A DNA stretch of 64,000 nucleotides from Guillardia theta CCMP2712 (taxonomy: Eukaryota; Protista; Cryptophyta), in assembly GCF_000315625.1 (NCBI RefSeq), contig NW_005434669.1, positions 757,638 to 821,637 on the forward strand. The letters are read 5' to 3'. A program made the translations under genes and the position numbers. Below are positions 6,721 to 10,935 of this stretch, one piece after another (the stretch's first letter is position 1; each line of letters begins with the position of its first letter). A model generated the notes under the pieces. That model was not told where the DNA came from. It made no database searches and worked only from the letters and a program-made list of their open reading frames with translations.

Positions 6721-7905
6721 ATGCGCGTCCTTCTCCTCCTCCTCCTCGTTGCTCGCGAGGCCTCCGCCTTCGCTCCGACCCCACTCACATTCACCTCCTC
6801 TGCATCAACTAGGCTCTCTCTCCGTCAGCCAGCCTTGTCCGCGAGCCCCTCCCTGCTCGCAAGGAGTAAAAGATGCGTGATCCTCCCAAAGATGTCGGTG
6901 AGTGAGAACAAGGCAGTTTGCGCCCAATCTCTTGCAAGATCTCAATCAACTTGTTCTCATTTATACACTGTCTTCATTTGAAAACAGTTTCCACCAAAAA
7001 TCTCTGGGCTATCCTGTTGAGCTCATGATCTATTCAGGCTGACAACGACCTCGCCATGTTCTCCGGATTGGAGCAGCTCAAGTTTGACGATGAGGGGACC
7101 GATCGGGAGAACCTTTCTGTGGAAGGCTTGAAGGCGACCAAGGTGCATGATCCTTGCGATGCTGGCAGCTTGCAGAAGCTACTGCCTCCCGCTTACGAAC
7201 ATAATCTATGACTCCAGGTGACCGACAGTGAGCCGGCATTTGCGATTTTCGGGAACGACATGTCCAGTGGGGTTCAGAAGGTCGGTGTTCGTGTGCTGAA
7301 GAGAAAGTTCAGCATGTTCGTTGGGTAAGAATGCTACTATGTCTCTGCCATGAATCAATCTGGTCCAGGATTTTGTCTCAACCTCGTTCACCCTCCAAGC
7401 CTTGCTGGGCAGACACTTTGCGCACTCCCGCCGTGATGTTGGGCAAGGGCGGCAGGTCCGCAGCGAGTATTCCTTTACTCGTCATTTGACAATGCTCTTC
7501 ATCAGCGTCTACCGAACAGGAAGGGTGGGAACCAAGCTGAGTGAATACCTCGGCCCTGAAATCAAGTCCCAGTTGGTGAGTAGAAACAAGGCACGACAAG
7601 ATCTCTGACGCGTGCTGGTTCAGGGAAATGCCTATCCTCCTAAGTTTCAAGAGGGCGACGTCATCCACATGGAGCTTGATAGGGACAATCAGGTCAGATG
7701 AGACTGAGAAATTTGCTCCGTTGAAGCTTCGACAGGTGTTCAAGTGCTGGGTTAACAACGGAAAGCCTTTCGTGGTGAATGGAGTGGCAAAGAACTCCAA
7801 GTTCTTTGTCAACATGGAGGTTAATTGCTTGGGATTCATGACTGTCTTGCGTTGACTTTGTAACAGGGTAAGGAATCAGCTGTTGAACTGGTCAAGCTGG
7901 ATTAA
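6721..7905 (+). CDS. Plastid-targeted multi-exon protein with a probable SPRY/B30.2-like domain
   Basis: Signal peptide ending ASA-FAP plus an S/T/R-rich transit peptide. Spliced exons give FSMFVG...KFQEGDVIHMELDRDNQVFKCWVNNG, resembling SPRY. Several ~50-nt GT-AG introns. Confidence 0.6.
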
Positions 7906-8066
7906 GGCAGATTCCGACCATATGCTCGAAATTGCATGTTTTAACAGGATACATTACATTATGGCAAAAATGAAATCGACTTTCAAGTAATTGGATACCA
8001 TATGATTGCTCAATTTTCAAACTTTTCTTCTCATCGGTATGATGTACAGGCCGCAATTGAAGAACT

Positions 8067-10343
8067 TTATGAGCCGTATCCAATGGCAGAGGTAGCGCGT
8101 TGCTCATCACCTGCTTCATCTGAAGCAATATGAACATACCTGTGGCAATCAACCTTGAGCCGTAACCATGACATCGCACAAACAAGTACCACAGAGAAAT
8201 AGCTTTCATCAGCTCAGGCTTGTCGATGACACCATCTCCAATGACATCAGCATGATCCAAGACCCACTTTACCTCTTCGTCTCTGAAATCGAGTCATTCA
8301 TATCGAACAAAGACGAGGGGGAAATCAATTCACGTCGGCATGATGTTGTCATTCAGCTCCATCAAAAGCGTCTTGAGTTGATCCCGGTTGAGTGAACCAT
8401 CCCTACACTGAAATTCAATTGGGCGAAACAATCAAAGTACAACCGCGCTCACTTGTCCACATCGTGCTTCTCGAAAACTTCATCAATCACATCTCTGCTC
8501 TTTGAACGCTACAGTCAGATGCTCATGATTGTAGTATGTGATAGCTACTTCATTGTACGAGAGCCATGCCTCGGCTGCAGTAGTGAAATATTCCGGTCTG
8601 GAGGTATGTCAGCCTTGAGCGTTCTATGGGCTGGTGACTCACTCAAGCGACAGGAGCGTGTAATCTTGTTTCTTGCTAGCAGCAGCCATAGACATTACCC
8701 ACTTGACCTGAAATAGCCAACTTCACTTCAAATTCAAATCGTAGGGAGGATGGCAGAATCACCTCATGGTCAGAGACATCTCGTCCTTTGGAGATAGATG
8801 ACAACCACTGGCGAAGCTCGTCGTAGCTCAACGACCCTTGAAGCAAATCAGTGAATCGCGAGGTATCAAAGTCATGCAACCAGTTCCACTCTTGTTCCAG
8901 TTCAGCAAGACTTCTTTGACGAACTATTGAATGAAATTCAGCGAATTCCCATGTCACGATAACAAGCCATACTTGTTTGTGCTCTTGCTTACGGTCCACC
9001 AATTCTCGTTTCTTAGCCTTGAATCCGGTATCAACAACCAAAAATTGCAAGAGGCATAAAAGTTACAGATGATTTCTTCACAAGTGGATTGGTTTCGTGC
9101 AGTCCGAGGCTTGCAAACATGTGATTCACATCTCGATGGTTTGCCTGAATTCGCATGTCAACGTGTCGATAGACAAACACACAGAGCACACCTCATCAGC
9201 TCTGACCACAAGGAACAAATCTCGCATGGTAGCATCGGGTTTCATGTGCCAATAGTCAATCGCTATTTGTGGCGCACGCTGCCCGTAAAAGTACGTCATT
9301 AGGTCATGAAAACCAAGAGAAGCACTATACAGCATTTCGGAATGACGAAAGCCTCCCATCATCAATGGCATTGAGAATATCTGTGTACGTCTTAACAGCT
9401 TCTTCTTCGAGGTATCCGACGAATCTATGGCAAATCTTGGGATAGATCAGGTACGTGACGAAGAATAAGTTCATGAAGACTCCTTGTGTTCCAAGAACAG
9501 CCCATCGGAAAATCGGGCCAGGCTTCTTGATAGTGACAAAGGTAAGCAGGTGCATCCGCTCGTTCTCAGCTTCCTCCAGCAGTGTGTGAATCCAGCCATG
9601 ATCGCGAGTCATTGTCCTCAGAGACCTCAGATGGCGAAGCATCCCTCCTACCATCCCAGGTACTCCAGCCACTGTTTCAAGGAAGATTGCACGATTGATG
9701 ACCTTCGATTCAGTCAATTGTCCGATTTTATAGCCAGACAGTGTATCAAACATCCATCTAGCCGTTTGAACAGCACGATACGCGATCGAATCTGCCGTGT
9801 CTTTCGGATCCACGTGGGTTTTCTGAACAGCGTAGATCTCCTCCTCGGACCACACCTTGCAAATAACAAGTCAAAACGCAACCAATCAGGATAAGAAAGT
9901 TCTTGTTGGACTTACGGAATGCTGGAATGGATTGTCCCAGACATCCTTCTCTCCCGTGCTTACTTTCTTCACACCCAGTGAATGTCTGTTGGGAGTGACT
10001 TTGAAATGCACCTAGGACACGAGTTACAAGGGTTTCAAAGAGGAGAATGGCGATGAAAGGATACCATGTCATGAATGATTTCTGGACGAGGTGGAAGAGG
10101 GTTAGGCCCATGAACTTCCCGGACTTGAAGGGGACAACGCTTGTTCGCATGTTTGTTTCGTGGCGCGTTCAATACCGATCTCCCGCCCATATGTGTTGCA
10201 GCCATGGCGAAAACAGGGACGTGGATGGAGCGAGAAGCAGAGGCAATCCACATGCATGCACTGGAAGAAGGAGAAGCTGACGCACTAGCCTTCCGCAACG
10301 CATTGAGCGCGGCTACTCCCTTTTGAGGGCGACGCAGCAGCAT
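8067..10343 (-). CDS. AOX: Mitochondrial alternative oxidase with a C-terminal calmodulin-like EF-hand domain (multi-exon)
   Basis: Di-iron motifs LETVAGVPGMV, EEAENERMHL, LEEEAVKTY and spliced RADEANHRDVNH. R/S/A-rich presequence. Downstream exons carry EF loops NKSGTGSLSYDE, DVDKDGSLNRDQ, DVIGDGVIDKPE. Confidence 0.9.
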
Positions 10344-10935
10344 TGCGAATGAGGGGATGAGATGGGGGTAATCCACGAGGAAAGGAAGGGGTACAAGAAA
10401 GGAGGGTCGTAACACCTTAGAGGGGCCGTAGTGGGGTAGGGTCAGTGGTGGTGGGGTGGCACCACCTGTGGTATGTCCACAGCAGTTAAAATGGGGGGTA
10501 GTTGAAGGTATAATGTAGGGTGTGATTCAAGATGGGTGGGAGAAGTCCAGGTGGGGTAATAATTTGTGAAGGGGTGTAATGGCCTGCAAGCCACATTGGG
10601 GGTGGGGTGGAAGTTTCGAGGGTAGACGAAGGCATACGAGAGTGAGGGGTGGGGGGGGGGGGTGGGGCGGTACATTACACTGACAATGTCAGGGGTACTT
10701 GATTGTGTGGAGGAGGAGGACGAGGAGGTGGGGGTAGTATGTATGAGGGGTAGGGTTCTGTTCAGTAGTGAAACGACGAGTTTTCGGATAAGCGCTCACC
10801 GTCACCCTTCACTCAACGGCCGCCTCTGACTCCGGGGGCTCCCGAGGCCCGGGTCCCGGGGGCACACTGCCCGGCCGAGTCCGACCCCGGGTGCCGGCTG
10901 AGTGACTAAGTTAGGCAACTGGGCCGCGGCCCGGT

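Follow-up and report, generated by a model that had tools for sequence, protein, structure and literature searches.

The stretch of DNA analysed here, referred to as the window, comprises 64,000 nucleotides of the cryptophyte Guillardia theta CCMP2712 (contig C5:757638-821637 of the 87-Mb assembly) and contains a minus-strand gene, 10343..8067, in which an alternative oxidase (AOX) is joined to a C-terminal, calmodulin-like tail of EF-hands. This gene is constitutively spliced into one mRNA of 14 exons that encodes 540 amino acids, and the fusion, which had been proposed from the DNA letters by a first-pass annotation, is real and expressed, with the EF-hand part passing Pfam cut-offs and matching calmodulin at E 4e-13. 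Taken as a whole, the explanation that fits best, and to which we give about an even chance, is that the spliced gene encodes an AOX whose tail was derived from a family of stand-alone EF-hand proteins ending in CaaX boxes, that this tail would serve as a regulatory module linked to matrix Ca2+, and that its sites have been weakened in Guillardia. The protein is already public (XP_005840739.1 / EKX53759.1, GUITHDRAFT_100729, UniProt L1JZN0), where it is called "EF-hand domain-containing protein"; the sequence is machine-annotated while the architecture is uncharacterised; its origin can now be traced and its clade defined, and its calcium sites call for caution.

One spliced mRNA spans both halves

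Four public RNA runs (X1, X4, X12 and X22) were compared with positions 7800-10450 of the window. In X1, X4 and X12, which come from three studies with three organism labels, single transcript contigs (100% identity) splice 13 of the 13 introns, the spliced-out stretches being 44-60 nt each and reading CT..AC on the plus strand, which is GT..AG on the strand of the gene. Among them is the 49-nt GT..AG intron at 9066-9018 that directly follows the last AOX exon (ending at 9067) and that had been predicted to link it to the tail; the tail contains eight introns beyond this one. When the 14 exons are joined at the RNA joints, they give 1623 nt with no internal stop and 540 open codons, from the ATG at 10343 to the TAA at 8069-8067 on the minus strand, which bears out the earlier proposal that the frame continues past intron 9066-9018 through further short introns.

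Whole-protein analyses were run on two public proteins, P0202 and P0313, and the exons were searched singly. The MMETSP transcript protein P0202 (523 aa) contains 13 of the 14 exon translations exactly and in order, and exon 1 matches it over its last 72 residues, whereas the reference protein P0313 (535 aa) has 12 of them whole. The RNA-backed joint 8549/8499 adds five residues (YNESR) that are missing from XP_005840739.1 (region 8453-8597) because the reference annotation takes another donor and acceptor for this intron. The donor used by the annotation is contradicted by the RNA joints, and the 540-aa form is backed by all RNA contigs as well as by P0202.

The alternative oxidase half

The AOX profile PF01786 scores 331.5 bits on P0202 (cut-off 22.7), of which exon 3 by itself accounts for a match of 259.5 bits. 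All four iron-ligand motifs are intact (LET, NERMH, LEEEA and RADEANH, the last split as RADE/ANH by the intron at 9191-9145), and the iron-ligand columns are invariant in an alignment of 69 sequences. In the AlphaFold2 (AF2) model, the predicted local distance difference test (pLDDT) value is >90 throughout the AOX domain, and in Foldseek this domain matches the trypanosome AOX (3W54/3VVA) at E 2e-17 and a TM-score of 0.83, with 50-58% identity. By profile, motifs and fold the protein is a complete alternative oxidase, and quinol oxidase activity is predicted for it. The first 75 residues contain no D or E and 11 R or K, with the first acidic residue at position 76, so composed that the N-terminus looks like a mitochondrial presequence; a similar start is seen in the Hanusia orthologue P0240. 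No Pfam match was obtained in the N-terminal 110 residues, and the EF units all lie downstream of the AOX domain.

The Trypanosoma brucei AOX (PDB 3VV9, 3VVA and 3W54) shares with the Guillardia protein its fold, the diiron four-helix bundle and the iron-ligand motifs. The difference lies in what follows, as the trypanosome, plant and fungal enzymes end soon after the last iron helix, whereas the Guillardia protein adds about 185 residues that make up a domain of four EF-hands.

A calmodulin-like tail built from two EF pairs

On P0202, three Pfam EF-hand families exceed their cut-offs: EF-hand_7 (PF13499; 48.5 bits, cut-off 30), EF-hand_1 (PF00036; 42.7, cut-off 25.4) and EF-hand_6 (PF13405; 43.6, cut-off 25), the best stretch for all of them being EF3. 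When the tail exons were searched one by one, a single weak, sub-threshold EF-hand match was obtained among them all, because they are too short. A profile built from seven orthologous tails, compared with PDB sequences, found the C-lobe of calmodulin (the E 4e-13 given above). From exon 6 on, the AF2 model contains a basic helix followed by four helix-loop-helix units (pLDDT 73-91), and the linker, residues 332-365 of P0202, is modelled as a single long helix. The Foldseek alignment of the tail with the whole of calmodulin spans about 148 columns, with an identity of 22-23%; searched alone, the tail gives weak matches (best E 5e-3, TM-score below 0.5), as is expected of two flexibly linked lobes.

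Aligned with each other over 52 residues, the first and second halves of the tail show 31% identity (E 5e-7), in a stretch that includes the motif D(H/E)EVKWV. This bears out the two repeated EF-pair units described in the first-pass annotation, and the tail thus goes back to an ancient doubling of an EF pair within the domain. The loops listed there (NKSGTG/SLSYDE, DVD(K)DGSLNRDQ and DVIGDGVIDKPE) are found where it had placed them, and EF2 is degenerate as it had said. The tail resembles calmodulin in having four EF-hands in two lobes, with only the C-lobe aligning by sequence. It is not a member of calmodulin proper (about 149 aa, with four canonical loops), from which it is set apart by low identity, by non-canonical loops and by a distinctive conserved EF2 surface. 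Enzymes with fused calmodulin-like domains include the CDPKs and NOX5/RBOH; in the AOX-EF protein, no autoinhibitory target helix was identified.

Origin of the tail

A profile search with the tail alone recovered complete stand-alone EF-hand proteins of 186-236 aa in Proteomonas (P0326), Hemiselmis (P0327 and P0329) and other protists. P0326 matches the tail at E 1e-64, with 56% identity over 85% of its length, and across the family the identity is 47-56% over about 85% of the tail. These proteins, of about 190-260 aa when all the relatives are taken together, share with the tail its N-terminal basic helix, the EVxWV motifs, the DVIG.G loop with its hydrophobic position 3 and the AISLWY motif, and they have CaaX-like ends (CSIQ, CAVQ, CVVM, CCIA and CTVM). 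Guillardia itself has stand-alone copies at C13:505313-505867 (L009, an open reading frame of 218 aa that ends in CVLQ and matches P0326 at E 2e-55), at C69:134190-134714 (L010, ending in CTIL) and on C28 (L011), L009 and L010 each being one uninterrupted open reading frame. The AOX tail is fused, is interrupted by its eight introns and ends in ..AIGYGS with no terminal Cys.

Because homology to the stand-alone proteins starts at exon 6, the intron at 9066-9018 is the fusion point of two once-separate genes, and the tail is a derivative of the CaaX EF-hand family. This family seems to be undescribed, and its members are probably lipid-anchored outside mitochondria, L009 and L010 probably being Ca2+ sensors. 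A 'Rosetta stone' reading, in which the stand-alone EF-hand proteins would bind tail-less AOX in trans, was considered unlikely, since those proteins end in CaaX boxes.

Orthologues, a paralogue and selection on the fused form

A full HMMER scan with the AOX exon returned 2163 relatives. Among the proteins obtained in the searches, a like C-terminal tail is carried by P0004, P0151, P0152/P0169/P0173, P0153, P0154, P0192, P0199 and their clusters. These tail-bearing orthologues come from JGI, ENA and Logan environmental assemblies, and bear no label more specific than 'Ca2+-binding EF-hand superfamily protein' or 'ubiquinol oxidase'. The environmental tails are 51-54% identical to that of Guillardia, the mean column identity among orthologues is 71%, and their Pfam EF-hand scores reach 53.8 bits. 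In one relative, a 9.7-kb metagenome contig carries the AOX and the tail up to EF3 in one uninterrupted exon, with no intron at the junction.

A second AOX-EF gene of like architecture is found in the Guillardia genome (L007, C57:87581-91099), with exons that correspond across all 13 intron sites; it lies in a GC-richer setting. Selection was assessed as the proportions of nonsynonymous (pN) and synonymous (pS) differences between the two paralogues, since dN/dS could not be computed with synonymous sites saturated. The values of pN (0.19 in the tail and 0.07 in the AOX part) lie far below the saturated pS (0.83-0.89; 0.83 for the tail), so both parts are under purifying selection. When AOX domains were placed in a maximum-likelihood tree, the two Guillardia paralogues were each joined to one Hanusia sequence (100/99), a grouping that is carried by the AOX domain only, as the available Hanusia models end before the tail. 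The Guillardia/Hanusia clade and the environmental tail-bearing clade then join, with moderate support (86/60), among cryptophyte AOXs. The fused form has by these comparisons been kept in two old Guillardia paralogues and in a sister environmental clade.

Other AOX-related loci were seen alongside these. The Guillardia genome contains five intronless, tail-less AOX genes, two arranged head-to-head (L001/L002, C19:96299-99364) and three as a triplet (L003-L005, C4:19658-24750), so that intronless and intron-rich AOX lineages stand side by side in it. These five have presequence-like starts of their own and are about 60% identical to the intron-rich AOX-EF genes. Weak matches to the AOX family occur at C92:103830-104408 (L008) and at C6:1133926-1134393; one of them (89 bits) lies in an open frame of 1038 codons, and the other contains internal stops. 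Among public proteins, the sea-anemone model P0001 (Actinostola sp., 363 aa) carries two partial AOX domains in tandem, probably because adjacent genes were merged during annotation; the next gene is P0209.

Independent unions of AOX and EF-hands

That EF-hand-bearing AOXs occur in other organisms, as the first-pass annotation had stated, holds true. N-terminal EF pairs are found on the environmental sequences P0071 and P0102, both below Pfam cut-offs, and on an AOX of the cryptophyte Proteomonas sulcata (P0319, 449 aa; 45.8 bits), while a canonical C-terminal EF pair is present on the environmental AOX P0028 (56.2 bits) and a single C-terminal EF loop after a long spacer on P0136. The three N-terminal cases are like the Guillardia protein in combining AOX and EF-hands in one chain; they differ from it in that the EF pair precedes the AOX, is not specifically related to the Guillardia tail and sits on an AOX that branches elsewhere. 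P0028 and P0136 share the position of the EF-hands after the AOX, and differ in having one pair or a single loop, an unrelated tail and another AOX branch. A shared donor for the Proteomonas N-terminal EF region and the Guillardia tail was rejected (hhalign probability 11%). In the P0319 transcript model the N-terminal EF segment LYKTFKAIDVNGNGLLEKSEVAQIL occurs twice, which may reflect either a genuine duplication or a fault of assembly.

In the AOX-domain tree the EF-bearing AOXs branch apart, with at least five state changes. Forcing all of them together costs 60 log-likelihood units (approximately unbiased test, p 0.012), in a constraint group that included the truncated Hanusia rows. AOX has acquired EF-hands on several independent occasions, with at least four arrangements besides the one seen in Guillardia.

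Calcium loops and the proposed role of the tail

AOX is located at the inner mitochondrial membrane, on the side of the matrix, so that the tail would lie in the matrix, where it would most likely act as a built-in regulatory module that couples the activity, assembly or partner binding of AOX to matrix Ca2+. Matrix Ca2+ signals are plausible in this organism, as a homologue of the uniporter MCU is encoded in the Guillardia genome (129 bits). The nearest mechanistic precedent is that of the plant and fungal external NAD(P)H dehydrogenases of the NDB1 type, which have a built-in EF-hand and shown Ca2+ dependence (PMC4587368 and reviews). Like AOX, these are non-proton-pumping enzymes of the respiratory bypass; they differ in being another enzyme with one EF insert that faces the intermembrane space and responds to cytosolic Ca2+, whereas the AOX tail would sense Ca2+ of the matrix.

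Across the family, sensing would take place through EF1 and EF3. Canonical EF3 loops are present in the orthologues P0151, P0156, P0169 and P0199, canonical EF1 loops in P0153 and P0154, and both in P0192, the fully canonical loops including DQDKTGSLSFEE and DVDGNGKLDRNE; the orthologues carry D at position 1 of the EF1 loop. Because canonical EF1 and/or EF3 are kept among orthologues, the ancestral tail is likely to have had one functional site in each lobe. The unusual DVIG.G loop of EF4 is common to all orthologues, and in Guillardia it has gained Asp at positions 5 and 9.

Several results weigh against a working Ca2+ sensor in the Guillardia protein. None of its four loops (0 of 4, in P0202 and in P0313) matches PROSITE PS00018, a pattern that calls for D at position 1, D/N/S at 3, D/E/N/S/T/G at 5 and D/E at 12, plus the rest of the pattern. 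The EF1 loop NKSGTGSLSYDE carries N at position 1, a site that is almost always D, the EF3 loop DVDKDGSLNRDQ has Q at position 12, the site of the bidentate Glu, the EF4 loop has I at ligand position 3, and EF2 has no loop. The paralogue on C57 likewise carries N at EF1 position 1 and Q at EF3 position 12. Acidic side chains matter most at positions 1 and 12 of an EF-hand, and E12Q or other amide-for-carboxylate swaps are the classic experimental way to disable one. The most conserved stretch of the tail is not a Ca2+ loop but the EF2 block, EVKWVMSMAA..DY..L.L.P..F..AAE, which looks like a docking face and is as compatible with a surface for docking as with a sensor. Three further points bear on the wider proposal: the mitochondrial location of the protein is predicted from its composition and family membership, the predicted template modelling score (pTM) of the AF2 model is 0.65, which bears on the placement of the tail against the AOX domain, and the full-text literature, with the accession included in the search and subscription journals thinly covered, yielded no paper on an EF-hand-bearing AOX, the matches concerning NDB-type dehydrogenases, NOX/RBOH or KEA3 instead.

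It is a substantial possibility, short of an even chance, that the tail is a pseudo-EF-hand module that does not depend on Ca2+, at least in Guillardia, and would act as a fixed structural, dimerisation or partner-docking domain. Such a role would suit loops that are all off consensus in both Guillardia paralogues, an invariant block made up of the loop-less EF2 region and the AISLWY helix, and a tail that is nevertheless under purifying selection. It sits less well with orthologues that keep one or two canonical loops (the two given above and others), with the acidic residues gained at positions 5 and 9 of the Guillardia EF4, and with the repeated independent additions of EF-hands to AOX, which point to Ca2+ as the common theme. 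The regulatory module linked to matrix Ca2+ is still preferred. The Guillardia lineage has probably swapped two key carboxylates for their amides, and because EF1 and EF3 carry these replacements, the Ca2+ affinity of its tail is probably low, or has shifted to the more acidic EF4. Direct calcium gating, as inferred by the first-pass annotation, would be plausible for the family and doubtful or weak in Guillardia itself.

The junction intron and its alternatives

The first-pass annotation had also suggested that retention of intron 9066-9018 could act as a regulated splice switch, yielding a tail-less AOX that would end in ..KKSSVTFMPLAIFGC. A retained intron would stop the frame after 15 codons (..VTFMPLAIFGC, then TGA), which would give a C-terminal length resembling that of ordinary tail-less AOXs, and contigs drop rare variants, which leaves room for a minor isoform. 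In X1, X4 and X12, however, the junction is spliced and no contig retains the intron. The depth in X1 is 57.7 over 8957-9045 and 90.5 over 9046-9134, as against 116.7 in bins that are all exon; since these depths match the exon shares of the two bins (45/89 and 68/89), no retaining contig contributes to them, and X4 shows a like agreement. The raw reads of X22 (60 nt, strongly 3'-biased, with about 6% of the run read) peak at 7978-8066, just past the tail stop, and are essentially absent from 8423-9400, with no 3'-end signal near 9000 and so no sign of an AOX mRNA ending there. Five separate tail-less AOX genes, moreover, make a switch unnecessary, and the related species described above has no intron at the junction at all. 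The splice switch is for these reasons held to be very improbable.

That the AOX and the EF exons are two adjacent genes, with the joined form an artefact of assembly or read-through, is suggested by the stand-alone genes of the tail family and by contigs that also run into the convergent neighbour and so can merge genes, yet it deserves almost no credence. Three studies and the MMETSP transcript all show an in-frame, canonical GT..AG splice on the strand of the gene itself, like fusions are found in the paralogue on C57 and among many transcripts from environmental assemblies, both parts share one exon in one relative, and upstream of EF1 the tail exons lack a separate start.

Features of the gene and its surroundings

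The coordinates of the exons, of the junction intron and of the 3' untranslated region (UTR) are collected in the table. The Y of the AISLW(Y) motif is the first full codon of exon 14.

Table. Positions of the parts of the AOX-EF gene in the window.
Feature	Position	Strand	Evidence or detail
Exon 1: start codon, presequence-like N-terminus, start of conserved arm (HGPNPLPP..IIHDM)	10065..10343	-	contigs reach 10359-10368
Exon 2: conserved VHFK..NPFQHS segment ahead of AOX domain	9916..10011	-	joints 10009>10063 and 9853>9914; exact in P0202 and P0313
Exon 3: AOX core with LET, NERMH and LEEEA iron-ligand motifs	9331..9855	-	PF01786 E 3e-77, exon alone
Exon 4: AOX, ending in RADE (first half of fourth iron motif)	9192..9278	-	PF01786 E 3e-10; RNA joints
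Exon 5: last AOX exon, ANHRDVNH...NPLVKKSS	9067..9144	-	RNA joints; exact protein match
49-nt GT..AG intron at AOX/tail fusion point	9018..9066	-	spliced in X1, X4 and X12 contigs
Exon 6: basic linker helix AKKRELVDRKQEHKQ	8973..9017	-	homologous to N-terminus of stand-alone EF-hand proteins
Exons 7-8 (8923-8881, 8836-8763), intron 8880-8837: EF1	8763..8923	-	loop NKSGTGSLSYDE at 8896-8881 + 8836-8817
Exons 9-10 (8707-8643, 8597-8549), intron 8642-8598: degenerate EF2	8549..8707	-	RNA joints; alignment
Exons 11-12 (8499-8453, 8402-8334), intron 8452-8403: EF3	8334..8499	-	loop DVDKDGSLNRDQ at 8463-8453 + 8402-8378
Exon 13: EF4, loop DVIGDGVIDKPE (8248-8213), then conserved AISLW(Y) motif	8190..8282	-	EF-hand_1 E 0.004, exon alone
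Exon 14: variable acidic C-terminus and TAA stop (8069-8067), without Cys, hence no CaaX box	8067..8139	-	translation
3' UTR, end point approximate	7900..8066	-	X22 raw reads peak 7978-8066, drop by 7889

On the plus strand, a convergent gene (7628-7900, with an intron at 7820-7866 that is GT..AG on plus) ends in or beside the 3' UTR of the AOX-EF gene. The unstranded contigs of three runs continue past 7865, merging the AOX-EF gene with this neighbour through the overlapping 3' ends. Upstream of the start codon, a long C-rich tract at 10400-10760 on the minus strand is rich in CCCAC and CCTC and includes a run of 12 C.

Significance of a possible calcium link for the alternative oxidase

Plant AOX is known to be controlled by a disulfide and by keto-acids, and fungal AOX by nucleotides, so that a built-in Ca2+ sensor would represent a third, direct mode. 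A bolder version of the argument, which we hold tentatively and consider somewhat unlikely, is that matrix Ca2+ gates AOX directly in several algal and protist lineages, with EF modules from different donors added at least four times, at the N-terminus or the C-terminus, and the sensor of Guillardia and Hanusia retuned or silenced through the exchange of acids for amides at two key ligand positions; if true, nature would have supplied a terminal oxidase under Ca2+ control in both an 'on' and an 'off' form. The natural variants with canonical and with disabled loops make the Ca2+ question easy to approach with recombinant proteins. For Guillardia itself, the reference gene model is corrected by five residues and the fusion is dated to a known donor family. 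The repeated and independent attachment of EF-hands to AOX is a strong evolutionary hint of a useful coupling, through which Ca2+ signals in mitochondria would bear on whether algae of ecological importance respire in an energy-conserving or an energy-wasting way.

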